Assembly: GCA_964304625.1 (NCBI GenBank) | Contig: OZ199840.1 | Coordinates: 6,445,120-6,509,119 of the forward strand | DNA length: 64,000 nucleotides | Source: Kudoa neothunni | Lineage: Eukaryota; Animalia; Cnidaria | Direction of reading: 5' to 3' | In this document: piece after piece, positions 10,352-54,075 of the stretch | Layout: every line of letters starts with the position of its first letter | Numbering within the stretch: the first letter of the stretch is position 1 | Translations under genes and position numbers: made by a program | Notes under the pieces: generated by a model | Told to the model about the DNA's origin: nothing | The model's database searches: none | What the model saw: the letters and a program-made list of their open reading frames with translations, nothing else

Positions 10352-12794
10352 TATATATAAAGAGGACTGTCGGTATGTTTGTTTGTGTGTGTATGCTCCT
10401 AAGTACGTATGTGCGGGTAATTTTTTCCTTATAGAGAGCCATATATAAAATTTTTATAAATTTTTGATATTTAAAAAAATCGTTTAATTGTTTTCGGACT
10501 ACGAAAGTTTCCAAAAAGTATTTATGAAATAGTGATTTTGTCGTTTTAAAGTTTGTGTTTCGGATTAAATGAGTTCAACTATAGGATTAGCACTTGCTTA
10601 TTTCATGGTTATGGTCGGTTGAAGTTAACTATCTCCTTTATATGCCCCATCATATGTTCATTAACTGCTTCTATCTATCTTTATATATAAGGTTGGCGTT
10701 TCTATTTGGGTGTCTGTTTAAACACATTCCTTATTTGTGGAGTTTTAACGTATATGACTTGATAAGTATATTCTATTAATGGTTTTCAATGTGATAAAAA
10801 ATTTATATATGTTTCATAAATAACGAATTCGTGGAGAATGTTGAAGTTACATTGATTGAAGCATTATAATGGAAATACCGCGTTCATAAGTTTCATTAAA
10901 TCGTCCGCTAAGCTTTACGTGGTTAAATTCAATGCGGATGGTTGTACTTTTATTTCACCAAATTATTTAAACTGTTTATGATAAAAGCGCATGTATGTTT
11001 ATGCCGAGCTAAACGATGCTAATTTTAGCAATATCGATTAATTTTCATAAGTTTTCTTCCATCTCTTATTTTTTCTATTTTTTTATCTCTTAAAAGTTAG
11101 TGGTGCACCTAGTTACCGAGCCAGGCCAGAATTCGACTTTAAAAAATCCTCCGGGCCAAAAAATAACGTTTTAGATAACACTTTAACGGGATTTAAATAA
11201 TTCGGAATGAAAAAAATACAACGTTGACCTTAACTTGTTTAGCGTTGATGCCGAGCCACGAAATTTTTAAGTGGATGCAGGGATTGATACTTTCCTTCAC
11301 AGAAATTATCATAATTTAAATTGCATAATCCAAATCGTTATAGTAAGTTGCTTAAAAATTTTTAGTTATTTTGTTTCTATGGGTTAATTCGAGATTTCAA
11401 TATATTTTTTGAATGCTATTAAAAAATGCCTCTAGGCGAAATCTTCCCCAAGCAACGCTGGGCAGTTCGAACTAGTTTATAACATTAATAATCTCTTTGA
11501 AGAGTATTTTTGTAAAATTTTTTGTTGCATTATAATCTAAGCACAAGGTATGAGTTATTTATTATCATATCTTTACAAATACATTATTAACTATAATTAT
11601 ACTTTAGTAATAAATAACAAATGCATTCATTAATTGATGGGAAAAAAATAATAAAATTTTAAAAATAATGAAAGTTTTTATGGCGGTTATATACCAGAGC
11701 CGAAAAAGCAACGAAAACCCGCTATGGGTTAATGTACGAATTGTCAATATTATATGCATATAAAATATTCAATAAAATTCCATAAGGCATAATTATTTCA
11801 CCTTAAAACAGCTGTTTTTTGTATACCGCAAACTCAAACCTGCTATTGGAAAATCGAACGTCGAACGTCGGTAGCTTTTCCGCAAATTACGAATTCAACC
11901 GTAATTCATTAAAAATATAATACTCCAAAAAACTATTACACCCATGTTTTTTATTAATTATTTAATACGTGTATATAAATTATAAATAAAATCTAAACAT
12001 TGGACCCGTTATGTGTTAATATAATCAATATGCTTACACCTATCGATTATATTGGGCATGCGCGCCTATTCTGCTGCAAACATCTGATTTTCAGAACTAT
12101 TCTATGTCTAAAAATAACGACAATAATGATTTATTAGATAATGCACAACGATAATTCCTCTATAACTTTTCAAATATATATAATAAAAATCTCTTGCGGG
12201 GTATATCACGATTATACATAAAAATAAATTACATTGTTTTAAATGGCTCTATTTAGAATTTTTGTGTGCATTTTCCAGTATAATAAATCATAAAAAATGT
12301 GCTTATTGAATATTTGAATGGATAACAACTTTAATAATTATAGTTAATTTCAAGAAAATGTTGAATTTTGAGCGCCGTGAAGGTACGATTTCCTCTCTTG
12401 TTCATTCAAACTTTGAATGAACATTAGACATGAAAACGTTGAACAAGTGACGCGTTGGATGTCACGTATCATGTTCTTTCATGTTCCCGAATTTTTAATA
12501 TCTCAACTACCCAAAATGAAAGGGAAAGCCGACAAATTCAAAAAACCACAGTAATTACAGGCAACAATTAATAAGAACAAACAACTTAAGAAGCTCGCAT
12601 ATAATAATAAGCATCCACAAAAACTGAAAGTATATAAACTACGGAAACTTCTCCAATCAAATTCAGGGGGATAAGAATTAAGGCTGGAATCATAAAAACG
12701 TTAGTGTTAAAAAGTTATGGTTTGAACACACAAAAAAAAACGATCAACACAAAACAATTAAACTAACAGAGAACAACAATCAAATCATCACAAA

Positions 12795-14062
12795 CTAAAA
12801 CATGGTTCTGGCGTTTTCGGATCTTGGGCAGATAATTTTTTGAATATTCTTCGAGACAAGATCAAGAAGTGCGTACTATTGAAAGTCATTATTTTAATGT
12901 CATCAAAAACGTTATTTAGCGTAAAAAAATTATACATAGTAGACAGAAAGTTCTTTAAAAAGGAACCTATAATTAACAAATTCTTTTTCATCAATCTCTT
13001 TGATGAGTTCTCTGTAGTCTTCCTATAAAACATAAACACATTACATTTATACATGCACAAGACAAAGTTAGAATGTAATATTACAACAAAGGGATATTTC
13101 ACCACTTTGGAGATAGCCTTAGATCTGGTAGCATGGTAACGGCCAAGCTGGTCCATATAAGTAGAGACATCACTCAACATTCGTGCAATCTCACTCACAA
13201 TATCCTCCTATGGAATTTAAAAGTAATGTTAAAAGGTTGTTGGAGGAATGAAAAAATATCAACTTGAACAGAGACACCAAAGTTGTTACCATCTTCAATT
13301 TTGGGGATTTTTAGTTGAATCCAGGATTGCATCTAGACAACAAATATTAGGATGAGTTGATTTAGCGCAAAGTACGGCACTGAGATAGCCAATCATCTCA
13401 CGTATTTCTCCCTTGAGCTTACTGCCAATGTCTACAACTGGCTAAATAGATTGGTTTAGATGGTAGGTGACAACAATAATCATATAACACAAGCAATCAA
13501 TTACTTGGCAGATAGGTACAACCAAATTTGATTCCAAAGCATGGGAACCATCCTTTGGCCTTTTGGCAGGTGCCGGCTAATGCAAAAACACATTCAGTTC
13601 GAAAGAACTCACACATTAGCACAATTTAAGTTATATGGTACCTTATTTTCGTCAATAGTCTGAGCTTCGCTGTAGGTTCTGATTTCTTTAACCCGCGATA
13701 ACGACAACTCCGAACTCTAAACCGATCTAATTAGTTATCAAAACAAATCGTACGAAATCTACCTCAGCGTAAGCTCTGAGCTCAATAATTTTGCGTGGAA
13801 ATTCTTCATTCAGAAAATGCATGACCTAAATGGGTATTCAGGTTGCGAAAAAAAATCACAACACTCAACAAATTTATGTCGGCAGTTTATAACCTACATC
13901 TTTATGTATACGATCCTTGATTTCGAGAATCTAAACGGTTTCCAGTAATCACAGGCAGACGATCTACTACAACGATATTACCTCAGGACTAATCTTTCTC
14001 AATTCGCCACTCTAAAACAATGTTAAATGGAGATGAGACTACAACGTAAGATCGACTACCAT
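12795..14062 (-). CDS. PSME3: Proteasome activator PA28 gamma (11S REG), ~233 aa, 11 exons
   Basis: Exons (minus strand): 14060-14062, 13982-14011, 13898-13930, 13763-13825, 13642-13716, 13505-13576, 13376-13441, 13264-13332, 13085-13207, 12936-13022, 12795-12875. All introns are GT-AG. Contains WIQLKIPKIEDGNNFGVSVQ (activation loop), KYPFVEDYRELIKEIDEKE and an NLS-like PAKRPK. An alternative in-frame ATG lies at 14158. Confidence 0.92.
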
Positions 14063-15369
14063 TCCCTCCGTATAATCACGCGCAGGCTTAATACGCACGA
14101 CTTTAGTACTCAACGTGTTGGTTTCGCCGATAATAGAACTGCAAGATTTCAAGGACATTGCTTTATTATCTTCTATTTTATAATGTTAAAATGTTATGCT
14201 TAATGGTTGCTATGCTGTAGTGCTAACCATCTAACTGGTTGCCTAAGAACCTTTACACTAGGAAGTTCAATATCACTATAGATTTTACCTATCTGCTTAT
14301 AAAATAGTAAAAATAGGTGCACCAAACTTAAATTAATTCTATAAATGTACATAGAGTTTTCATAAAATGGTTAAGAACGTAAGATTCAAAGTTTCGGAAT
14401 GCGCACATCGGAGAATTAATCCGAAATATCATCGCATAAGTTTGTCGGCAATCCTTCGTTACTGGTCAAGTTATTTAATGTCTGATGACCCCTGTGAAAA
14501 TTCTTCATTTAGTTGCCGAATTGCTCAATGTCAAGCTGATTTATTTTGTTCATAATTATCCGCAGAACTCTGTTTATGAACCTTATCGACTTTGTTTTAT
14601 TCAAATAAAACTCTTTCGTTGAAAGAAAGCATTCTATCAGAACTTATTATTTTTATTTGGTCATTTTAGTAATGAAGAGCCAAAAAATAATAATAACTAA
14701 CGCGAACTACCTACCTCCTGGGATTGGGGATATTTTATCATAATGGAACGTGTTTAAAAACATACATATCCTTTCAATTAACCAGATGGGAAATTTAACA
14801 AACCTTGTTTCTAAAATATCATATTTTTAACGACTGTGATAAACTTATTTAAAATTAAAATCATTTTCGAGAAACCATAAAAATAACAAAATCTATATAA
14901 CTCAACGACAACTGGAGACGATTTGTTTATACATGATTTGAAGTACAGTAGTGGATTGGCCTACGTAACTCCCTTGGGATGGGTAAATTGTACATACTAC
15001 CGGTCCCGGCCGGATAGTACGTATTTTTTGCGCAAGCGCACAAATATATTAAAATATAAAACTAGCTAAATTAGGTTACCGATTTTCCGTAACTTCAGAT
15101 TTTCTTGCCAACTGTAATAACCTCTATATTATTGCCGGCGTTGGTCGTGACACGTTATTGTTGTTTTGTGCTCATTGTCTTCTTGTGCGCTCGTTACACC
15201 TACAAATATTATTTCAATATTTAAACCATATATTATATTTTATTTGTCAGTTTTAATAATAATTTACAAAAATTTTAAAATTGAACATTGGAAAGTGGTT
15301 TTTTCCTATTATCAGTGCTTAGCCGCTTTTCCGTCACTTTTCAGCTATAGGCGGATTTAGTGGTGTGTC

Positions 15370-18974: not shown

Positions 18975-20241
18975 TAGGCTTTTAAAAAATCGAGAGTCGA
19001 AGAAAATTTTAAAAAAAACGAGGTTGATTATGTGTTGAAGTGAGGATTATTAAGGATTCGGATAGGGATTTCATGATTCCAACGTTTTGTAGTTGTTACT
19101 CGTTTTTACAAACATTCTGGTAGATAATACATCTCAGTAAATGAATTATATTAGTTTAAAACGCTTGAAACATTCAATCACACAAAGATATTGAAGTAGC
19201 TTAAAAATATGACGTATTATTTCATTTTATATTCAAAAGCTAGGTTATTAATGTTTATTTTTAGGTTTTACACCATTTTTATATTGTTGAGATAAGTAAT
19301 AAAAATATGCTTTTGATTTATTAACACTCGTAATTGATTTAATTCTAAATGCCTAAAAATGGTATATTTTGTTTCATGACGATTATTTTACTTTAAAGTT
19401 AATTTTAATTAAAAAAAATTATTGAATATTTTTTTTAGTTACTTAATGTAGATAAATAAAAAGATACCTCGATCAAATGGATTAAAACTTTCCATGTTTG
19501 AATTTTGGAACAAATATTGTTATAATATTTGTTTAATCATAAATAAACCATCTGAAAAAATTTATAAACTAAAAACCACATTATGGAATACCATCGTTAA
19601 ATTAAAACATCTTCATTCTAATTTTAAATACGAAATCACAAGATTGAACGTTTACAAACTTATTACTAACAGATACAAATAAAAAAATTCAATGAACAAT
19701 TAACGACTTCGAATTTTTTAAAATTATAGAAAAATAATAATTTTGTTGATGTATTTATGAGCAACAGAGGTTCCACGCAAATCCGAACGTGTTCGACTTA
19801 AGATTTATCTCCAGTTTATAAATTAATTCTTTTTGACCCGAATTTAAATGCATAATGTAGTTTTTTGTGATAATATAAAAAATAAAAAAACATTTGAAAA
19901 TGAAGTGAATTAACAGGGCGAATTGTAGGAAACGACTTTATTTCCGATTTTGTATTCGACACCACCCGAAATTCTACACAGATACTGTAGTACTGTAGTT
20001 TTGCTGATATTTTAAAAGAAATAAAATAGTTTATTCCAGAAAATAATGCACTGCCGAATTTTGATAAGAAAATTTCTCCTAACATTGATTACAAAAATGT
20101 ACTGTATACGAATCACGCAATCTTGTTAATACATTGATTTAATCTCTTCGAATTAGAGGATAATCCCTATAACTCGAACTTTTGAGGGTTTGGAGAATTC
20201 TCGAGGACCTTCGAACTCGACCCTCGATTTTTTTAGTACTA
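18975..20241 (+). mobile_element. Non-autonomous TIR element X, copy 1 (hAT-like termini)
   Basis: TAGGCTTTTAAAAAATCGAGAG ... CCCTCGATTTTTTTAGTACTA, with subterminal TCGA repeats. A near-identical inverted copy lies at 30999-32247. Confidence 0.8.
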
Positions 20242-21328
20242 CAACGGATCCGTGTAATCCTCACCTTCGGCACGTGCTATTACCACGGGAACCAATTACT
20301 CTGCAATTATTATCTCTATTAAATAACTAATTTCACATTACTAATATTTATATTTTTCTCTACTAAATTATAGAAGTAGATAACAATCGAGAATATCTTT
20401 TTACATATTTATATTGTTTACTTTAATGATTGTTTTCCATAATTAAATGGAAAATTTATTAACCTTAGTTTAAAACACGATCAAAATTGTATTATATCAT
20501 TTTCTGTCAACAATAAGGTTAAAGTTGAAGAATTATGTGTGTGTTTGTATAATTCTGACAATATTCCAGAAGCGCGCGCTCCCACATTGTGTATTCAAAC
20601 TCGTATAACTTAATTTATTTCCAATCTTTACAATATTCAGATTATATGATTTATTGTATTCTATTCTTAAATTATGAACTTCAAGATAAAATATGCTCAC
20701 TATATTTCACAGAAATGATGTGAATTTTCCGCTTTAGATTTCAATATAGACAAGAATTTTGAGAAAACTAATCATAATTGGGTCATTTTTCAGAAATTAG
20801 ATGAATACAACACGATAAACAATGGCTATCCTAGTCAAATAAATAATGAGAGATCGAAGAAAATTTATTTTTCTTTTTGTATCCAATAGTGGTTAAAGCG
20901 TATCCCTTTGGTCTCCCAACAGACTTCACTCGAGAGGGAATTTTTAAGGCTAAAATAATTAAAAAAAAGAAAGGAAATGAAATGAAAATACCATCAAGTT
21001 CGATCATATTTAAAGTGGGCGCTAATTGATCTTCAGACAAAACAGTTTGGATCTCGAGAGCATTTTCATTTGAAATATTATTACCAACACCCTCAACAAT
21101 TATTTGAGAATTAAAAATATTCCCAATAACATCTATTTTTTGTAAATTAGATACGAGTAAAGTATTTAAGTTAAGCGTCATATACCTCTTCCTTCAGAAA
21201 TATCTTCGTCTTCGGCTATAGCCTCGGAGTATTCAATAATGCGATTTCCTAAAAATAAATAAAGAAAAATTAAGTTTTCTTAAAATACCTAATTGATTTA
21301 TTTGTTTTATTAATTTGATGTCGTGGTT

Positions 21329-21410
21329 TGTAACACGAACGAGGAGGCAGAATTAATGGACAACAATAATGAGGGTACTACGACTACTAATTATCTATGA
21401 TGACGTCACA
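21329..21410 (-). repeat. 3' LTR (82 bp)
   Basis: TG...CA termini; 80/82 identical to 25118-25199. Confidence 0.95.
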
Positions 21411-21414
21411 TATG

Positions 21415-21424
21415 TCCCCCTTTC
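21415..21424 (-). promoter_or_regulatory. Polypurine tract
   Basis: GAAAGGGGGA on the minus strand, 4 nt before the 3' LTR. Confidence 0.8.
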
Positions 21425-21462
21425 GAAAAAAGGCGAGATGTCGTTGTGACATAATTTTGCAT

Positions 21463-24308
21463 CTATCCAGGGCTCGCTTTCTTCCTATTGGATGATCTTG
21501 CTTGGTTTTCGGCGATATGAGGTATTACATTATTTGCATGTATTACATGTTCTTTGCCATTTTTCATATAGGTGTTGGTAGACCCTTTCACATTGACCAC
21601 TTCGAAAGGTCCAGTGTATCTTTCAGATAGAGACGATGCAAATTGATTTTTTATCAAAATTTGTTTGGGATCGATAGACTTTCTGGACCTTGCTTTTTTA
21701 TCATAATGTCTTTTTTGCGTAGTTTGTGCATGTTTTATATTTTGATTCGCAGTATTCGTCAATGTTTTCATTAGTTTACCAAGTGATTTTGCATAATTGT
21801 TGTAGGTTGTACTATTTCCAGATGCAGCGGTTTTAAGAAAGGTGTTTGTAATTGTCGTAAGATCACGTCCATATGTAAGCATTGAGGGAGAAAAACCAGT
21901 TGTAGAACTTATTGTATTACGCAGCGCTAGTAAGGCCATAGGGAGAACTTCATCCCATTCTAACGAGTTCGAGTTGCAACCAATTCTAATTTTCTCTTTA
22001 ACGCTTTTCACGTATCGCTCAGCAAGTCCATTTCCTTCCGGGTGATACGGAGTGGATTGTGAATGTTTAATTCCAAAATTTTTACAAACAGAGTTAAATA
22101 GATCTGATTCAAATTGCGTTCCACAATCAGTGTGTATACCATGAGGAATTCCATGTCTACTAATGATATATTCCATTACGACTTTTGTGGTTGAAGCTGC
22201 CGACATATCAGGTAGTGGAATCGCCTCGGTCCATTTTGAAAATCGATCTACAAATATCAATATGTATCTATTACCTTGGCTTGTTAATGGTAAATGACCC
22301 ATGAAATCGGCATGCCAGTGGGAAGCTCGAGAATCTGTCGGAATAGGTTTCATAGGTTCCTTGAACTGTTTCTGAGAATATTTATTCTTTTTGCATAACA
22401 AACAGTTACTGACGATTTCTATCACGTCATTGGTTAATGTAGGCCAGAAAAAATTCCTCCGGATGGTTTCTTCAGTATTCCTTTGACCAGCGTGCAACGT
22501 GTCCACCTGATGTATCTGTTTGATAATTTTAGTTTGCAGTGACTTCGGTACCACGAACAAATCTCCTCTGCGGGATTCGTGACATAAAACATTGTTCTTT
22601 ATCTTTAGGGATTTTATACGGTCAAGCAAGGGATTGGTGTTCGAAATAATTTTTTCTTTATTGGTTGATCTTCCCTTTGTTTCATGGCGAAGTCATCAAG
22701 GTTGGTAATATTTATACAAGCAACACTCCTCGAGCATCCTTCATTCTCCTGATGTTTGTTAAAGGATTGTGGTCCGTCAGTATCGTGAACTTTTTTCCTA
22801 ATAGGTAATGGCGAAATTTCCTAACTCCAACAATAATAGCCAAAAATTCTTTGTCCGTTGTGCAATAATTGAGTTGAGCATGATTTAATTTTCTGCTGGT
22901 ATAAGCGATAATGTTTTTGTTTCCATTCTTTACTTGGTATAAAACAGCCCCAACTCCGCTGTAAGAGGCGTCACATTCCATGGTAAATGGAGGGTTGACA
23001 TCCGGAAAACAGAGCGTAGGGTTTTGTTTGATTTTTTCTTTTAGCGTGTCGAAACTACGCTGAGCTTCCTGTGACCATACAAACGACTTTTCGCTCGTTG
23101 TCAATTTGTAGAGTGGTGCGGCTATTTCCGCCATATTTTTTTGTGAATCTATGAAGGAAGTTGCATGTTCCCAAAAACGATCTTAGCTCCTGGACGGAGG
23201 TAGGTATTTTCCAATTAGTAATTGCGTCGACTTTTTCTGGATGCGGAGTAATGCCATCGTTAGATACTATGAATCCTAGATATTGGATTTTGTTTTGAAA
23301 AAATACGCACTTTTTTCTATTCATCCTCAGATTTTGTCGTTCGAGGCGCAAGAAGACGTTTCGAAGGTGTTTGATGTGTTCATCGTAATCAGATGAAAAG
23401 ACAATTATATCATCCATATACACCAAAACGTATTCTAGATCTCCCAATATATTATCCATCATTCTTTGGAAAGTTGCTGGTGCGTTTGCTAACCCAAATG
23501 GCATACGATTATATTCGTATAGCCCCTGACCATGACCAAACGTAAACGCAGTTTTGGGTTTGTCTTCCTCTGCCACAGGAATTTGCCAGTAACCACATTG
23601 CAAATCCAATGTCGAAAATATTTTCGCTCCACTCAATTTATCCAGGCACTCATCAATTAGAGGAAGCGGATATTCATCTTTAATAGTGATATCATTGATT
23701 TTTCGGAAGTCAATACAAAACCGATAAGATCCATCCTTCTTTTTAGCAAAGGTAACAGGAGATCTATAGGGACTAGTTGATGGTCGTATTATTCCGGCTT
23801 TTAATTGTTCATCCAACTATTTTTGGGCTGTATCTCGTAAATGCATAGGAACCGCGTATGCCCGTGAAGTAATTGGGGTTTGCGTTGTTGTAGGTATCTG
23901 GTGTTGGAAGTCTTTTGCAAGTTGCAAATCCGTCGGAGACGTAGCAAATAAAGACTCAAATTGATTTATAAGGCTATCGAAATTATTGGTTTCTCTGTTT
24001 ATGGTATTCGGTGACTTATCCACGTTGCCTTTCCATACCAAATCAACGTGTTTCAAGATGACGTCTCTGCCAATGATCGCGTCGTATGCGATTTGCTTCG
24101 TTACGTGTGCAGTAACTTTTATTTCGCCGACTTTGGTTTTGATGTACATATTGGCCAGTCCAGTACTTTGGAGTTTAGATCCGTTTGCTGCCTTAAAGCA
24201 TTTTGACAAGGGTTTAACGTATTTGGGGTCAACTAAGTCGTCTCTAACGAACGTACAACATGCTCCTGTGTCCAGCAAGGCCATAATAGTACGACCCATG
24301 CCACTCAC
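21463..24308 (-). pseudogene. pol (protease, reverse transcriptase, RNase H, integrase), disrupted
   Basis: ALLDTGA; RFCIDFRKIN, MPFGLANAPATFQ, YMDDI; CDAS...TDH; H...H...CLLC, ADFMG, HTDCG, GLAE. Lesions: an in-frame TAG at 23817, a frameshift at a T-run near 23135, and a deletion near 22712. Confidence 0.92.
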
Positions 24309-25117
24309 GCGCGCCTCAAAAAAAACACAGAGTAATCGTCATTAAAGTCAAACGAAATATCGTTAACGTAGTTGAATTTGGAACAAATTCTACTAACATG
24401 GCCAGATTTGCCACATTTTCGACATACAGCTCTTCCCAAACATTCATTAGCTAAATGTTTTCTTCCGCCGCATTTTGAACAAGGGCCTCTTAGTGGGCGA
24501 TATCCAACGTTGCCTTTGGGGCGCGTATTCATTTTCTTCTCTCTAGAGAGTATGGGGGCCACGTCGTTGTCATAACTAGCCATTTTTGAGTTAGAATTTC
24601 AATCATCCAATAATAATTGTGTTTTTTCCATGATTTGAAACATATTTGCCTCACCGAATAGCTTTACATGAACTTTCAAATGTTCTGGGAGGATATCCAT
24701 GATTTTTTGTCTCAGAAAAAATTCGACGTCCTCTTCGGTCGCCTGTGGCCGCGCCATCTTGAAGAGTGAAAAGATACTCTGGTAATAATCTTGGACCGTT
24801 TCTTTCGGCTTTATAGAGGCTTGCGAAAAATCGTGGAAAAATGAATCCTTACTCTTGAGACCTCTTGAATACTGCAATATGTTCTCGTTAAGAATGGTAA
24901 TCATTTGGGTTGACGATAGGACCACGCTTTCATCATGTTGGTTCGGTTTGAAATATTCACGCATATGACGAGGGATTGCCAGGAGTGTTGAAGCGTATAG
25001 CTGTTTCTCATCCCAACCTTTTGCAACTGCTTGCAGTTGGAGCTCTTCGAGTTGTTGTTCGACATTCTCGTTAAAATTTATCGTCATAGATGCTGTGAAT
25101 CCCACCTTTGACACCAT
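24305..25117 (-). pseudogene. gag with two CCHC zinc knuckles and an in-frame TGA at 24599
   Basis: CSKCGGRKHLANEC and CRKCGKSGHVSRIC. The two ORF pieces are in the same frame. Confidence 0.85.
25099..25116 (-). promoter_or_regulatory. Primer-binding site, tRNA-Leu type
   Basis: TGGTGTCAAAGGTGGGAT lies 1 nt after the 5' LTR and matches the familiar tRNA-Leu PBS TGGTGTCAGAAGTGGGAT at 16/18 positions. Confidence 0.8.
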
Positions 25118-25199
25118 TGTAACACGAACGAGGAGGCAGAATTAATGGACAACAATAATGAGGGTATTACGACTACTAATTATCTATGATGACGTCACG
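25118..25199 (-). repeat. 5' LTR (82 bp)
   Basis: Direct repeat of 21329-21410 with the outermost base mutated. Confidence 0.95.
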
Positions 25200-27699
25200 T
25201 GGTTCCTGGTTAATTTTTCTATTGTGTTGAATAGTGATAGGCAACTATCATAAAACTTTCCAAAATATTCAGCGGACAACGCTACAAACTTCTTTTTGTA
25301 AATCACCAAATTTTTTAAGCATTTTCCATAAGAACTAAAAATTCCTTTCGGTTTTATTGAAATACTCTCTTTTGGAGTGATATTTATAGTTTCCATTTTC
25401 AAGAATCGACTCATGTAATCTTTTGACCATCTAGGGTGGCGTAGATTTGAATTGAACATTGAAAGCAGGTTAAACGCTCACTTATTAAAAATATGACTAC
25501 ATGGAAGGAGATACGATATGTAAGTATAACAATTGCATCTCAATTTAAGTAGTTAAACCATCTGTATTCGTGTTTTCGTCAAAATTTTGAATTTGTTTGT
25601 GGATTAAATTGAAGGCAAGTGGATTTAAATGATTAAAATACGTGTTTAGAACTTCATTTGAAGTATAAAAATATTCTGGGTCCAGTAATGTTTTGGTTAT
25701 ATTGTATTTTCTTTCTATTCTCATTGATTTGAGAGCGTCAAAGAAATAGCGGAAAAAATCATTGAGATTAGACAATTTCTTTATTGTTTGTTTTCGTTCA
25801 CCATTAGTGGCTTCTAATCTATTATTCGTCAAGTTTTCATAGAGGCGATGTGCTACACTGAATCCTATGACCCTTTCATGAGCGATTGTTTCCCAATTGG
25901 ATTTAAAATAGTTAATAAACTTATCGTTTCTTTGTTGAAAAAGATTATTGCATAGTTTATCGATTAGATAATTTTATTAAGAATTTCAAGCACCTCCTTA
26001 GAGTGTGGTGCTTATCAGTAATAATTGCTCGGACACCTTGAGTCATGTTCGGCATCATTTTTATTAGTTGAGAAATATACCATTTAAATGATTCCGCCGT
26101 TTCATCGTACAAGATGCAGCCGCTAGTTAGGTGGGTTTCACCAACCGAGTCTTCTGCAACAGACGGATACAATGGCGCACTAATAAATTAATAAAACAAC
26201 CAAATAGAGAAAACCTCCAAAGATTACCGTGAGTCTAGCAGTTTATAGGTTGCATCAAGCATGAATAACTTTGGAAAGAAATTAATTATGTTGGACATCT
26301 GCTTATCCTTAACAAAGGTTCCACAAACATTTTTATTATCATCTGATAAAGCGCTCACTATGCAGTTGCATTGATTCTTTAAAATTTTTACAACTAATGC
26401 AATATTATCAGATCCGACTTTGGAGGATTTTCTAATGTTGTGAGCAGTTTTCAAGGGTATATTGTTGTCTGTCTCGTCATTTATCTTGGCTTGTATGAGC
26501 TTTTTGTTTGTTTCAAGAGAAAGAAGTTCCGACAAATAGCCATCACATTGGTTTAACTTCCTCTGATTGAGTAAGTTTTCATAGATCCATGGATCATTTG
26601 GATGGTTATGGGCAGTGTTAGAAGATCTATTCTCCAGGAAATTTCCATCTACATTCACTCTTAACGTAACCTTAAATGGGAAATCTCTCTTAAGAGAGTC
26701 TTTTGCATTCGCCTTTACCTCTATTTCGGTAATGGGCGCCAAAGTAACATACGTAAGTTATTTCGTAATACACTAGCGTGTTTTTAATATTTCGCTTAAC
26801 CCGGCTTTGTACTGAGTCAATTCTGCTTGAATCTCGAATTTTTAGATTCGCAACATGACTTTTCTCATACTGTTGAATATAAAATTTTAAACTTTCAAAA
26901 GTTTCAAATTCCATTCCAACATGAAAATTGTCTGAATTCGAATCACTCATTGTAGTTCAACCAAACTCTTAAAACACGTGGAGTTATGTTTACACTGCAT
27001 GGCTCAAAGCAATAAATTAGAAATGATTACTTTTTATAATTAATTCAAAGTTAATATTGTTTTAGCCTATTAAATTCGCTAACATTTATATTACTAGCTG
27101 TCTATTTTCTACAAATTTCCAACCAACTCAAATTTCTTAATTTTTTATAATTAATAGAGATAATAATTGCAGAGAAATTGATCCCAGTGGTTATAGCCAC
27201 TGCCCTGTTTAATTTAGCTTTTTTGAGATCGGTTGCTTATCACTCAATATTTAAAAAATGTATTAAGTTGAATAAAATTAAAATCGGAGATGTAGAGCGC
27301 GCCGTAACATGACTAATTTTTGAAGCCATCTGCTCCTAGATTACCAAAAACATCAATTTTTCTTCTAAATTCCAAAAAAGGGAATATGTACAATTATTAT
27401 GCGCATGCACGAAATCGGTTACCTACTGTATTTATTTTATTTTGGTTTTTGATATTACAAAATATCACGAAAACAACTATTGAACTGATTTCATTACAGA
27501 TGGCTCTACAAAAAAACAAAAAATCCTCGCTTTTCTGTCTCGAGATCTCGAACAATAACGGCATCGCTCACGATAAACGAATTCTATTATGCAATTATAA
27601 TTCTAATCAACGCGATTTTTGTTTCTCCGAACATGATCCTTCGCCAAGCCATCTTCAGGCTCTTCTAGAAACTTAACTCTTGAACAATTGATATCATAG

Positions 27700-27930
27700 A
27701 AAACAGTCATAAAGATAAAATGAATCAACCAAGCTAATACCAACCATAATGTAGGATATTGCTGTCGACCATCGATTCGTTTACTTCATACATTCGTTGT
27801 AGCAATAATATGATCCATTGTTTCCATTCCTCCTTTTTAAACGATTATATTGCGGGTTAACAACAGGTTTTTTCAGTCTGTATCTTCAACATTTGTAATG
27901 AACCGGTGGTCGTTAGTAATAAAACTGCTT
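27700..27930 (-). pseudogene. piggyBac transposase C-terminal relic
   Basis: A degenerate VLLLTT...KP..YN..KGG..D...RW pattern. Confidence 0.45.
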
Positions 27931-28923
27931 TACCTTTTGTCGGAACATAAGAGATTAGTATAAGTTTTTGATTAAACAAAAACGTACTGAAATTTCCCGT
28001 TTTGAATTATTTTTTAGATAAGTTGTAATATCTCTTTGATTATTTCGGATTATTTGAAAATGAATTCAATGATAGCGTTGACTCTTCATGAGAACTATCA
28101 ATTTTTTCGTCACTAATATCTACTAAAATGCAATAGATATCTTTTTTCATAACTAATTCACGAAAGGATTTAAATAATAAGGTTCTCAATATATCTCTCC
28201 TATCTCATGGGAGTTTATTTGTTGAATAGTCGTGCTATATTTTATGGAGAATGTGTTTTTTTGTGTAAATTTAAGGCCGGAAAATTTTATTTGAAAATTT
28301 CTATATTTTTTTAATTTTATAAAAAAACAGAAAAATAAGTAGCTTCTGTAACTACATTAGTTGGATTATTTCTAATATTAGGCCAGGATTTGTTGGTAAG
28401 TTACCACATTATGCATAATTGAATGACGTCTTTTTCATTACCCAATTTCTAAGTATGATACATAATATTAATATATATAATTAATCACCTAATTTAAGTG
28501 ATTAAATAACTTATTATAATATTAAAATTGTTGTTATTAACTCTAGCCTTTTATAAATGATCATATTTAATAATTTATTAAATTACGCAAATTTCAAATG
28601 TCTAAAAATCTTAATAGCGTTATCGTAATGCTGATACCTTTGTAACTGTAAACAGGAACAAATGTCATTGGGAATACATTGGAGGCTATTTCAAATTGAT
28701 CCATATACGAGGCCAACAATGATAAATATTTAAACTGCATGATGTTCAGACAGAACGAAACCTTATAAATTTTATAAAAACTAAATAAGCTAAATTAAAA
28801 AAACTATTTTAGATACGAAAACATAAAAAATTAGAAGGTTCTATAATTTCAAAACATTAAAATTAGATATTCAATCATTAAAATCATTAGTTGTTGAGCT
28901 TTAGGACGTATATATATATATTA

Positions 28924-30187
28924 TTAGGAGTTGATTCGATTTTTCAGTTTCAAGTATATATTGAGTCTGTACGTTGAATAAGTAAATTTACAAAAACAGA
29001 ACATTACTTGTTTACAAGGTTATGCCTAGCTGACATCAGATGAATATGACTTATTGTCATGTGCCAAGTGTCTCTGCCATGGATAAAATTTTCAGCATTC
29101 TAACAATAATAAAGAACAGATAACTAGGTAAAGATGTTGTTTTGGGGTGAACAACCTTTTCTATTAACCAGTCGCCTCGTGATTTACTTAAGCTGAGAGG
29201 CATTGTTACTATAAACGGTTAATTTAAATAATATTACAATATCGATCAAAAATTATAATGCACTCTCATCAAATAAATTAAACGATATTATGAAAAAGAC
29301 ATATGCAGATATATGGGAACGCAAAGGATAGTTTGTTCACCCCTAACAACGACTGCTCATGGGATTACTTTCATCAGAAAAACTCCACAGTTATAGCCAT
29401 CTATTTGAGGTATTGAACGAATATCGGTCAGGTACCAATTCATCGCGTCAAAATATAATCTAGGAGAAATCCATCACATTGCAAGTGCGCCAATTCTAAT
29501 CTACCTAAAGTGTCTGAACAAGCTGGACCTCGTTTGAAGGGATTCCACCGAATTAAATATTGTCACCATTGCTCGTCTCACATCAGCAGCAATCAAAATC
29601 CAATGATCATCTTGACAAATGGGAATCAAAATGAAACTTTTATTGTAGGCATTTCTCTATAATAATGTGCGTAAGTGTTAATTAAGATAAAACCTCATCA
29701 AGTACTTTTTTTAGGTTGTACACATCATGTTTGTTTAGCTTCCAAAACTCATTGATTAGACAATTAAATATAACAATATCGCTTCTTTGAAAAGTCAAAG
29801 TTTTTAAATAATACATTATAATCTAAAGTTGTTTATACGAGGGAAAAGTAAGAGAAGTTAAGCAACTTGATCATTAATAAAATTGGTTCCTTCAAGAGAT
29901 TCAATGTCTTGAGATATAATATCCAATTTCATAAAAATACAAACTATAAACGGTGATCAACTTTTTGACTAAAAAATAATCGCTAACAATATTTACATTC
30001 AAAATATAGTAACTCTTCTCTTTTTTTAATATCTGCAAAAATTTTGAATAAAATATTTTAGTTTATTAAATGATACTTGGAATATTTCTATAGATATTTG
30101 ATTTGAGCAAATTTTCAATCTAGGAAAAACTAATATAAAAACCTTACTTTATACTGAGTGTACAATAATTCCTTTATTTCTACTCAT
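28924..30187 (-). CDS. Ulp1/SENP-family (peptidase C48) cysteine protease, ~224 aa, 9 exons
   Basis: Exons (minus strand): 30164-30187, 30077-30119, 29997-30032, 29867-29943, 29706-29822, 29505-29656, 29369-29459, 29008-29099, 28924-28966. They total 675 nt in one open frame with all GT-AG introns. Motifs: DIESLEGTNFINDQ|IIMYYL, ILIPICQDDHWILI...VTIFNS, PQIDGYNCGVFLMK|NAE. The true N-terminus is uncertain. Confidence 0.8.
29136..29350. mobile_element. ~215-bp MITE inside intron 7 of the Ulp1-like gene
   Basis: Inverted ends GTTGTTTTGGGGTGAACAA and TTGTTCACCCCTAACAAC. It accounts for the only long (269-nt) intron. No TSD resolved. Confidence 0.6.
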
Positions 30188-30998
30188 GGAGGAAATTTTA
30201 ACAGCTGAAAAAGAGAGCACTAGCTATATGGTGATCTACTCGAAAAATAGGTGACGTCATAGGAAGTTATCTGAATTTAGTTATGCAGCAATTGAAATCC
30301 AATAGTGACATTTTAAGCAGTTTCTATCGATTTTATCGCATTCAATGCGTCACTATTAATAGAATTCATTTGTGAGCCTGATTTCTCCTTATACAATACG
30401 ATTTTATTGACTAGCTAATTGAAAATATTAGCGATGAATACGCTTTTTAGCACTTTTACGTTACTACCTTTTATAAATTTCAATATTAATATCATGACGA
30501 ATTCAGATGATAAATACATTATTTCAAATAAAAAAAATGATAAGTTGGAACAATGGTGACAAAACCTATTTTAATCATAAAGATGGTCAAGTAATTTTTA
30601 CCAAGTTTTTATATCGTCCCTTAACTGGACGATTGTTCGATAATTTAGCGTTTCGATTCAACTGAACTCGTAAACGTCAAATTGCTCCACCATGGGAGCC
30701 TAAAATAGAATGAATATTCTTGCAACTTGTATATATTATTGTTGAATATTTATAATTTTTAACATACCAAACTGAACACAAATTTTTTGAATCGATTACA
30801 CCTTCAAAAATAGTTACGTAAGTCATCCCTTCAGATTAATACCTAAACTAAATGTACATAAAAACAAGTACAATTAAACTTTTATTATTTGAAAAAGTGG
30901 GTGCCTAGGCCTAGCCGTTTTATTTTGGGTACTGAGATTTAGGCTAACTTAAGTTGAACAAGTTGCGCGTGTAACAGAAAGAGAATTTGGGTCGCAAC

Positions 30999-32247
30999 TA
31001 GGCTTCAAAAAAATCGAGGGTATATGGATTATCCTCTAATTCGAAGAGATTAAATCAATGTATTAACAAGATTGCGTGATTCGTATACAGTACATTTTTG
31101 TAATCAATGTTAGGAGAAATTTTCTTATCAACGAATTCGGCAGTGGCATTATTTTTTTGGAATAAACTATTTTATTTCTTTTAAAATATCAGCAAAACTA
31201 CAGTACTACAGTATCTGTGTAGAATTTCGGGTGGTGTCGAATACAAAATCGGAAATAAAGTCGTTTCCTACAATTCGCCCTGGTTAATTCACTTCATTTT
31301 TCAAATGTTTTTTTATTTTTTATATTATCACAAAACAACTACATTATGCATTTAAATTCGGGTCAGAAAAGAATTAATTTATAAACTGGAGATAAATCTT
31401 AAGTCGAACACGTTCGGATTTGCGTGGAACCTCTGTTGCTCATAAATACATCAACAAAAATTATTATTTTTCTATAATTTTAAAAAAATTCGAAGTCGTT
31501 AATTGTTCATTGAATTTTTTTATTTGTATCTGTTAGTAATAAGTTTGTAAAACGTTCAATCTTGTGATTTCGTATTTAAAATTAGAATGAAGATGTTTTA
31601 ATTTAACGATGGTATTCCATAATGTGGTTTTTAGTTTATAAATTTTTTTCAGATGGTTTATTTATGATTAAACAAATATTATAACAATATTTGTTCCAAA
31701 ATTCAAACATGGAAAGTTTTAATCCATTTGATCGAGGTATCTTTTTATTTATCTACATTAAGTAACTAAAAAAAAATATTCAATAATTTTTTTTTAATTA
31801 AAATTAACTTTAAAGTTAAAATAATCGTCATGAAACAAAATATACCATTTTTAGGCATTTAGAATTAAATCAATTACGAGTGATTAATAAATCAAAAGCA
31901 TATTTTTATTATACTTATCTCAACAATACGAAAAAATGGTGTAAAACCTAAAAATAAACATTAATAACCTAGTTTGTTGAATATAAAATGAAATAATACG
32001 TCATATTTTTAAGCTACTTCAATATCTTTGTGTGATTGAATGTTTCAAGCGTTTTAAACTAATATAATTCATTTACTGAGAATGTATTATCTACCACGAA
32101 TGTTTGGTATAAAACGAGTAACAACTACAAAACGTTGGAATCATGAAATCCCCTATCCGAATCCTTAATAATCCTCACTTCAAACACATAATCAACCTCG
32201 TTTTTTTAAAAATTTTCCTCTCGACCCTCGATTTTTTTGAAGGCCTA
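30999..32247 (-). mobile_element. Non-autonomous TIR element X, copy 2 (inverted)
   Basis: TAGGCTTCAAAAAAATCGAGGG ... CCCTCGATTTTTTTGAAGGCCTA. The body is the reverse complement of 18975-20170 and lacks a ~50-bp subterminal block. Confidence 0.85.
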
Positions 32248-32248
32248 A

Positions 32249-32269
32249 TCCGTGGTAATAGCCACTGCC
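32249..32269 (-). repeat. MULE-family terminal inverted repeat (unpaired)
   Basis: TCCGTGGTAATAGCCACTGCC belongs to the same GGCAGTGGCTAT terminus family as 3322, 20269 and 27204. Confidence 0.7.
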
Positions 32270-48600: not shown

Positions 48601-49435
48601 ATCGTAATAGTATAACAGAAAACAACCACCGATCTAATAACGATCACCATTAATTACTGAAGGTCGGTTCTCTATGAATTAATCGGCTATAGAATTTATT
48701 GTTTACGTTTAATACACATGACAGTGCTAAAAACTATTCACTTCGTGAAACACATCAATAATATTTAAGTATTATCCGATTGTTTTTCTATCGGTAATGC
48801 GGCAGTTGATTATTTTCAAGGGGTGATATAATTTTGTGATGAGCAGTTTATTAGTGCAATCACATAATATTAAATTAAATAAATCAAATATTATTTCCGA
48901 TGTGGGAAAACAGACCAAGTCTCCCTGCGAGATAAGCTATTTTAATAGGAAATGGTTATTGCAACCGTAAATAATATTCAGGGGCCACTAGTTTTGACTA
49001 TAATTAGTTTTGGACGCTATGAGTGAAGCGACAGGATAGAAATAATTAAATATAGCGGATTCTAAAGAGTTGAATCTGTATATAGTTTTTGAGCAAGAGT
49101 TACTGGTAATAAAATCGACATTGCGCACACACAAGTAGCATTTAGGATTAAAATTTATCGTGCCAATAACCTCTGCCATTTTAATATTTTTGAGATTTGC
49201 ACGAAGTAGATTGATCATATATATCTACTTATACAAAAGCGCGGGGAATCACGCATATTTCAAGTGAAGAATGCATCCACTCTGGCGTAGCAGAAAATCG
49301 GTCTAAATTATTCCAGATATCCTCTTAGTTTATTTTTAAACCACATGTTATATTCAAATAAACTTTATTTCAACTTATTCCTGAATTTAACTGATTTCTG
49401 CGGCATTTAATAAAGAAAGTTGGGCTTTTGGATTT

Positions 49436-50117
49436 CCTGTGGCTCCCCCAAAATAGCCTTATTGCGAGCATTTTTTTCGAAAACCACACCAAAAATTATT
49501 TCTCACAAAAAGAATATGGAGTGATATGCTTTCAGTACCACAAATTTATTAACAGTTTTTCCAGTTAATCTATTCTCGGTTGTTGTCGTTGGATTTTTAA
49601 TGTTGCTGATCAACATACGTTTGTTCATCTCACCATGAACCCACATGATTTCTTGTAATTTTCGTCTAAAAATAAACTAATAATAATAATTTTACAATTA
49701 ATATTATCCACAAGAAATTAAAATTTATTCAAAAATACAACCGTTTACATTCTCAACCGAATTAATGTAATTCTCTTTCTATTAATTACGATTAACTTTA
49801 CACTTAAATTTTATTTGGTTTACAATTACATTTTCTAGTCTCATTTTTTATATTAGTATCCGCGACACTTATGTTCGGTTAATTAACATTTTACTTTAAG
49901 AATGTATAAACTCTCTATGTATACATGAAAAATAAGCTAAATAAAATGGTCAAATTTACAAATAAATGACCAATAATAGTATTAAATCGTAAAAATGTCG
50001 TTAAATAATTTTTATATATTCTTTTCTTTATTCTTCTTTCCAAGTGAAAGGGTTAATTTACACGTACTATTTATATTATTTGTAAGTAATAAAAAGTATC
50101 AACGAAAAATAGTACTA
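49436..50117 (+). repeat. 682-bp inverted repeat, left arm
   Basis: Reverse complement of 53273-53954; I noticed only two substitutions. Confidence 0.95.
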
Positions 50118-53272: not shown

Positions 53273-53954
53273 TAGTATTATTTTTCGTTGATACTTTTTA
53301 TTACTTACAAATAATATAAATAGTACGTGTAAATTAACCCTTTCACTTGGAAAGAAGAATAAAGAAAAGAATATATAAAAATTATTTAACGACATTTTTA
53401 CGATTTAATACTATTATTGGTCATTTATTTGTAAATTTGACCATTTTATTTAGCTTATTTTTCATGTATACATAGAGAGTTTATACATTCTTAAAGTAAA
53501 ATGTTAATTAACCGAACATAAGTGTCGCGGATACTAATATAAAAAATGAGACTAGAAAATGTAATTGTAAACCAAATAAAATTTAAGTGTAAAGTTAATC
53601 GTAATTAATAGAAAGAGAATTACATTAATTCGGTTGAGAATGTAAACGGTTGTATTTTTGAATAAATTTTAATTTCTTGTGGATAATATTAATTGTAAAA
53701 TTATTATTATTAGTTTATTTTTAGACGAAAATTACAAGAAATCATGTGGGTTCATGGTGAGATGAACAAACGTATGTTGATCAGCAACATTAAAAATCCA
53801 ACGACAACAACCGAGAATAGATTAACTGGAAAAACTGTTAATAAATTTGTGGTACTGAAAGCATATCACTCCATATTCTTTTTGTGAGAAATAATTTTTG
53901 ATGTGGTTTTCGAAAAAAATGCTCGCAATAAGGCTATTTTGGGGGAGCCACAGG
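53273..53954 (-). repeat. 682-bp inverted repeat, right arm
   Basis: Reverse complement of 49436-50117. Confidence 0.95.
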
Positions 53955-54075
53955 GTATATAATAGCCAAGTGGGTAACGGATCGTGAAACTTAATCTCTT
54001 GTGTGCAGCTTGAATTTCTAATAGTTATTTTTGTATTTAACAGCTTAACAATTGGCGGAAAAATTAAGTAGAGTA

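Follow-up and report, generated by a model that had tools for sequence, protein, structure and literature searches.

A small, heavily split gene in the genome of Kudoa neothunni raises the question of whether an Ulp1/SENP-like protease lying near a Mutator-like element (MULE) is the cargo of a transposon or a gene of the host. The stretch analysed, here termed the window, is 64 kb of OZ199840.1 (GCA_964304625.1), and the genome searched comprised 40,260,978 bases in four contigs. The assembly has been described as 40.2 Mb in size, with an N50 of 12.0 Mb and three chromosomes accompanied by a circular mitochondrial contig (PMC12239612); the supplement of that paper makes no mention of C48 or SENP. 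An initial annotation of the window had tentatively attributed the protease to a Mutator element at this locus. The comparisons described below lead to a different answer: the locus probably holds, in place of MULE cargo, a conserved and constrained host gene of family C48, which would encode a putative active intracellular isopeptidase.

Gene model and catalytic domain

The protease is read from the minus strand as nine exons (Table 1), which join into a frame of 675 nt, or 224 amino acids, with a single stop at its end. Introns 1-8 measure 44, 44, 53, 44, 49, 45, 269 and 41 nt and all eight are bounded by GT and AG; introns of ~49 bp and a GC content of 30% have been reported for this genome (PMC12239612). 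The nine-exon, stop-free structure proposed in the initial annotation, with introns of 41-53 nt and one enlarged intron, was recovered exactly. The spliced model was searched one exon at a time, scores and likelihoods being summed over separate exons. When exon 6 was searched against 1.84 billion representatives, two proteins were returned, P0001 and P0002. The former is encoded on a Logan contig (L053; 2.4 kb, 18% GC) from a distant relative (sequencing accession SRR31175926) and is the orthologue referred to below; its exons 2-8 are identical in length to those of Kudoa, its introns are 29-42 nt long, and 103/211 residues (49%) are identical between the two proteins. The identical exon lengths place the gene model far beyond chance. 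Exon 1 and its start codon are regarded as the least certain part of the predicted gene, since no counterpart was identified in the orthologue.

Table 1. Positions of the features discussed (window coordinates unless a contig is named)
Feature	Position	Strand	Remarks
PA28 gene	12791..14160 (bounds approximate)	-	conserved neighbour
hAT-like copy 2, inverted	18975..20241		left breakpoint of the inversion
MULE C	20242..27204	-	ZSWIM-type transposase domains, none of C48; interrupted by Gypsy element
Exon 9	28924..28966	-	43 nt, stop codon included
Exon 8	29008..29099	-	92 nt; starts NAE, like orthologue and Ulp1+PHD relatives
Intron 7	29100..29368	-	269 nt; 29 nt in orthologue
Exon 7	29369..29459	-	91 nt; oxyanion Gln168 29407-29405, catalytic Cys174 29389-29387
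Exon 6	29505..29656	-	152 nt; PIC motif, His117 29605-29603, Trp118, Asn134 29554-29552
Exon 5	29706..29822	-	117 nt; substrate-binding region; without RW motif
Exon 4	29867..29943	-	77 nt; Phe56 (lid position), Asp59 (= SENP5 Asp585)
Exon 3	29997..30032	-	36 nt; basic cluster KKR, conserved between the two orthologues
Exon 2	30077..30119	-	43 nt; equal length in orthologue
Exon 1	30164..30187	-	start codon; no counterpart identified in contig L053
hAT-like copy 1	30999..32247		non-autonomous, 1.25 kb; right breakpoint of the inversion
TIR tip	32248..32269	-	severed 22-nt end of MULE C 3' terminal repeat; 22/22 match
SENP1-like gene (L002)	contig G000:C3, ~8036400-8038100		same chromosome as protease
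SENP6/7-like gene (L057)	contig G000:C2, ~5103000-5103900		missed by the Pfam genome search

The DNA of the protease is present in a single copy in the K. neothunni genome. Its intron 7 contains an insert of ~200 nt (29141-29346), the ends of which form an 11-nt perfect inverted repeat. This had been called a MITE; since a search of the K. neothunni genome gave no second copy, a MITE is a plausible reading and not an established one. The last intron of the SENP1-like gene of the same genome, at the same position, is also enlarged (260 nt).

Membership of Peptidase_C48, for which an HMM search had been proposed, is borne out by exon 6, which on its own passes the cut-off of Pfam PF02902 (26.4 bits against 20.7, E 7e-6); the orthologue fragment scored 30.1 bits. 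A fold predicted for the 123-aa orthologue fragment only (pTM 0.43) gave Ulp1/SENP structures as the top Foldseek rows, with a best E of 0.0075 in what was a weak search. Profiles of exons 4 and 7 matched no C48 structure, a word search with exon 6 gave no matches, protein-atlas searches returned generic C48 clusters only and a metagenome scan for the protease was empty. The catalytic set consists of His117-Asn134-Cys174, the oxyanion residue Gln168 and Trp118 following the histidine, all of which are kept in the orthologue. The His-Asn-Cys triad first noted from the sequence therefore holds, with the right order and C48 spacing, and the protease is predicted to be a stand-alone C48 catalytic domain from the SENP1/3/5 side of the family.

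With the canonical enzymes (human SENP1/2/3/5 and yeast Ulp1) the protease has in common PF02902, the HW motif, the conserved Asp of the ND motif, the order of His, acid position, Gln and Cys, and the spacings His+17 and Cys-6. It differs from them in having Asn for the triad Asp, in lacking the long N-terminal arm and the RW motif, and in having PIC for PIH. The lid Trp (Trp582 in SENP5; Phe in SENP6/7) is replaced by Phe56, and the helix-loop ahead of the Cys strand is 12 residues shorter. The substrate-binding region in exon 5 also has two residues fewer than that of the SENP1-like gene of the same genome.

The residue at His+17 is Asn in the protease (codon AAT) and in the orthologue, whereas the SENP1-like gene of K. 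neothunni has Asp there. It has been reported that triads of the CE clan accept Asn as the third residue (PMC1847702), and in ASFV pS273R the triad is Cys232-His168-Asn187 (PMC9920524). The existence of such enzymes shows Asn to be compatible with catalysis. The likeness to ASFV pS273R and to some bacterial CE deubiquitinases lies in the His-Asn-Cys arrangement and is accompanied by no sign of kinship in sequence or gene structure (the ElaD/SseL profile gave 14 bits, with a cut-off of 27); most simply, the Asn of the protease is an independent change. In a limited literature search, no animal SENP-type protease with a triad Asn came to light; as far as found, the precedent lies elsewhere in the clan. 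Occurrence in two species does not by itself mark the Asn as selected, because the replacement of Asp by Asn takes one transition towards AT and both genomes are AT-rich.

An inversion spanning a conserved, probable host gene

The view that the protease was carried by an element at this locus, the transposase of which had decayed, was based in part on a MULE terminal inverted repeat (TIR) upstream of the gene (32249-32269). The match exists, at 32248-32269 and over 22/22 nt; it lies 2 kb upstream and faces the protease, and MULEs can be abundant in the genomes of myxozoans (bioRxiv 10.64898/2026.02.11.705288). It is not, however, the mark of a protease-bearing element, as it completes the truncated end of MULE C. 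Two copies of a 1.25-kb element, inverted relative to each other, are situated at 18975-20241 and 30999-32247; their family is termed hAT-like because of its TAGG ends and the 8-bp target duplications seen in other copies. As assembled, the flanks of the two hAT-like copies match at 2/8 and 2/8 positions; when 20242-30998 is re-inverted, they match at 7/8 and 5/8. The same operation joins the TIR tip to MULE C, the end of which is truncated at 20242, and rebuilds the terminal repeat (22/22, 55/61). It also turns the protease onto the plus strand, near 21053, in the head-to-head arrangement with PA28 that is seen in the relative, and this serves as an independent check. A 10.8-kb inversion (20242-30998) between the two hAT-like copies has thus moved the TIR tip of MULE C, and the association of the protease with Mutator at this locus is an artefact of that inversion. 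More generally, a transposon-mediated inversion can leave a stray TIR tip next to a host gene and so mimic a cargo relationship.

With or without the inversion, the protease lies outside MULE C, and no single element encloses it between a pair of TIRs. The MULE C tail, of which the genome has ~27 near-full-length copies, had been described as a decayed Ulp1-like sequence; no C48 similarity or motif was seen in the MULE C family copies examined, nor were C48 motifs present in any of 14 MULE-family loci. Of the upstream DNA that had been taken for decayed exons, the part separating the protease from the hAT-like copy is single-copy and has no similarity to MULEs. Copy number and TIR association, proposed as checks on the Mutator link, gave a single copy without enclosing TIRs. 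With the orthologue situated ~0.5 kb from PA28 as well, carriage of the protease by a local Mutator element is refuted for this locus and retains hardly any probability. An anti-silencing role on behalf of a resident transposon, which had also been suggested, is unlikely for a gene that is single-copy and syntenic.

Several observations on the repeats of the window were made along the way. The two hAT-like copies are 96.5% identical to each other, compared with ~80% for other copies of the family, and this excess likeness suggests local duplication or conversion. The Gypsy element within MULE C (21328-25198) has 82-nt LTRs that are 99% identical. At least two MULE families have the first 19 nt of the TIR in common (L044, L045, L047-L049), and within the MULE C family a TIR variant that is 41 nt longer and partly duplicated is carried by some copies at one or both ends. 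A second inverted duplication (49423-50117 and 53273-53967) spans 695 nt at 99% identity. The region at ~27300-28150 has weak (70%) similarity to other loci and is perhaps a decayed transposon; a piggyBac relic was suspected there, but no Pfam match was obtained.

On the contig of the relative, PA28 and the protease are arranged head-to-head, ~0.5 kb apart, and PA28 is also found within the Kudoa window. No MULE was found on this 2.4-kb contig. No further orthologue came from word searches in which P0001 or alignment A5 served as query, and selection was assessed on this one orthologue. The NG86 estimate of dN/dS was 0.29 (bootstrap 0.09-0.46), or 0.20 in the core, a rough ratio because dS is near saturation (1.5). 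Identity at codon positions 1/2/3 was 0.62/0.73/0.45, and a codon model rejected dN/dS = 1 with a likelihood-ratio statistic of 103.6, the ML omega itself being unidentifiable. The value of dN/dS, which had been named as a check, is therefore about 0.2-0.3 and not near 1, and denotes purifying selection; the test rejected the reading of the locus as a young pseudogene or a relic of a transposon. Single copy, synteny and purifying selection, the properties by which domesticated transposon genes are judged, are all found in the protease, which appears to be a long-established gene of the host, syntenic with PA28.

Host or transposon ancestry of the domain

Using Pfam and three motif profiles, three C48 genes were found in K. 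neothunni: the protease, a SENP1-like gene and a SENP6/7-like gene. This count is a lower bound, because profile searches are loose. In the SENP6/7-like gene, a one-base frame shift right after the LNDT motif is possibly a low-coverage assembly error. All four introns of the catalytic core of the protease match those of the SENP1-like gene in position and phase (4/4; chance ~1e-9 to 1e-6), and therefore the protease descends by DNA-level copying from an ancestor of the SENP1/3/5 type. Three routes from such an ancestor were compared.

Rated at slightly below an even chance, with a host duplicate about equally probable, is the ancient domestication of a transposon-borne Ulp1 of the Mutator or Ginger1 (Ulp1+PHD) type, in which the transposon had taken up a host SENP, introns included, and the transposase and PHD finger were lost before the two myxozoan lineages split. 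Apart from the orthologue, P0002 was the only match to exon 6 among the 1.84 billion representatives. This protein and its diverged paralogue P0004 are encoded on contigs L054 and L063 (1.6-1.9 kb, samples ERR14368248/9) by genes with spliceosomal introns, and each has a C-terminal PHD-like finger, the match to which is weak and below the cut-off. The Ulp1+PHD architecture occurs in Ginger1 and Mutator transposases, including those of Hydra (PMC2836005), and it is from architecture that the transposon status of the two proteins is judged, as their short contigs carry no transposase. Contig L063 ends in short tandem repeats that resemble subterminal transposon repeats.

The protease and the two Ulp1+PHD proteins depart together from the SENP1-like gene by three spacing changes (21 vs 23, 16 vs 14, 16 vs 17), by PxC in place of PIH, by LEG and NAE, and by the absence of RW, although PIC is found as well in 6DG4, a host Ulp1-like protease from a fungus. 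Exon-wise scores were higher for the Ulp1+PHD proteins than for the SENP1-like gene (248 against 175; with the query exon left out, 142 against 117). In a six-taxon likelihood comparison, which was made without SENP3/5, SENP8 or cnidarian sequences, grouping with Ulp1+PHD was favoured by 5/5 exons. The total lnL difference was small (~6) and the Kudoa SENP1-like comparator is fast-evolving; the two analyses lean weakly in this direction. The Ulp1+PHD relatives, the nearest sequences found, have two intron positions in common with the protease, i.e. 2/4 of those that it has in common with host SENP1, and they keep the triad Asp. The protease, for its part, differs from transposon-type Ulp1 proteins, including Arabidopsis KAONASHI/KIU, in lacking a transposase, a PHD finger and enclosing TIRs, and in being single-copy, syntenic and under purifying selection; furthermore, transposon-borne C48 was not detected in the K. 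neothunni genome. Of the transposon ancestry originally suggested, the local MULE is lost and the idea of a remote origin survives, through nearest relatives that have a transposon-type architecture.

Nearly as probable as domestication is that the protease has been a host gene throughout, either as an orthologue of SENP3/5 that evolves fast or as a copy of the SENP1-like gene that lost its N-terminal arm. The four matching introns fit this reading, but capture by a transposon at the DNA level would preserve introns too. Among solved structures, exon 6 matched human SENP3 best (29.2 bits, against 15 for SENP1/2), the exon 6 counterpart of the orthologue likewise ranked SENP3 first, and the NDQ motif is also as in SENP3; single copy and synteny are in keeping with such a history. 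Against it, SENP5 scored no better than SENP1, E 0.001 was attained in the large search by P0002 but by none of the SENP3/5 representatives, and the spacing changes and lost RW are not SENP1-like. A highly diverged orthologue of SENP8/NEDP1 (DEN1, a deneddylase) is improbable: the stand-alone domain of ~220 aa, the deviation at the two SUMO-contact positions (Phe and Trp) at which NEDP1 deviates, the Tyr at Cys-2 and the N-x-E after the Cys helix that resemble NEDP1, and the failure of four genome profile searches (loose ones, from which short exons could hide a gene) to find SENP8 are set against introns of SENP1 type, the lack of any match of exon 6 or 7 to NEDP1 chains at E 10, a rank below Ulp1, SENP1 and SENP5 in the weak fold search, and the absence of the loop insertion that precedes the catalytic His in NEDP1.

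Putative activity and specificity

By analogy with the family, His117, oriented by Asn134 in place of Asp, would activate Cys174, Gln168 would form the oxyanion hole, and Phe56 and Trp118 would clamp the Gly-Gly tail of the substrate. The protease would most likely remove a ubiquitin-like modifier, with a non-canonical preference. SUMO binding by SENPs depends on Asp585, Phe609 and Trp625 (SENP5 numbering), and NEDP1 departs from them at the last two positions (PMC12098989). In both orthologues the equivalent of Asp585 is kept, and Trp625 (of the RW motif) is absent from exon 5, where the SENP1-like gene has it. The position of Phe609 is occupied by Leu in both orthologues in the ungapped register, the register of exon 5 relative to SENP5 being ambiguous by a few residues; the equivalent of His642 of SENP5 is Cys in the protease. 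Altered substrate specificity may plausibly follow, because two SUMO-contact aromatics appear to be lost.

A relaxed activity on SUMO may have been retained, which we rate as close to an even possibility, while action on NEDD8 or ubiquitin is conceivable at a slightly lower level of expectation; an inactive protein, or one with a substrate other than a ubiquitin-like modifier, seems rather improbable. Genome profile searches found neither NEDD8 nor a clear SUMO gene, although short exons could hide them. It is unlikely, though worth stating, that a transposon-derived Ulp1 was domesticated early in a myxozoan lineage as a stand-alone His-Asn-Cys isopeptidase of switched specificity, possibly replacing a lost SENP8/NEDP1. 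If this were true, such a replacement would have taken place in one of the most reduced gene sets among animals. Gene loss has been extensive in myxozoans, so a third C48 protease that is retained and constrained should serve a needed function. If the transposon ancestry is true, the domesticated domain would give a handle on the targets of the widespread transposon Ulp1 domains. The Asn-triad protease also offers a natural experiment on the parts played by the third triad residue and the SUMO-contact aromatics in setting activity and specificity.

With regard to location, no hydrophobic leader was apparent by eye, and the KKR cluster of exon 3 is a possible nuclear signal. The conservation of this cluster and the apparent lack of a leader make a nuclear or cytoplasmic role likelier than secretion into the fish.
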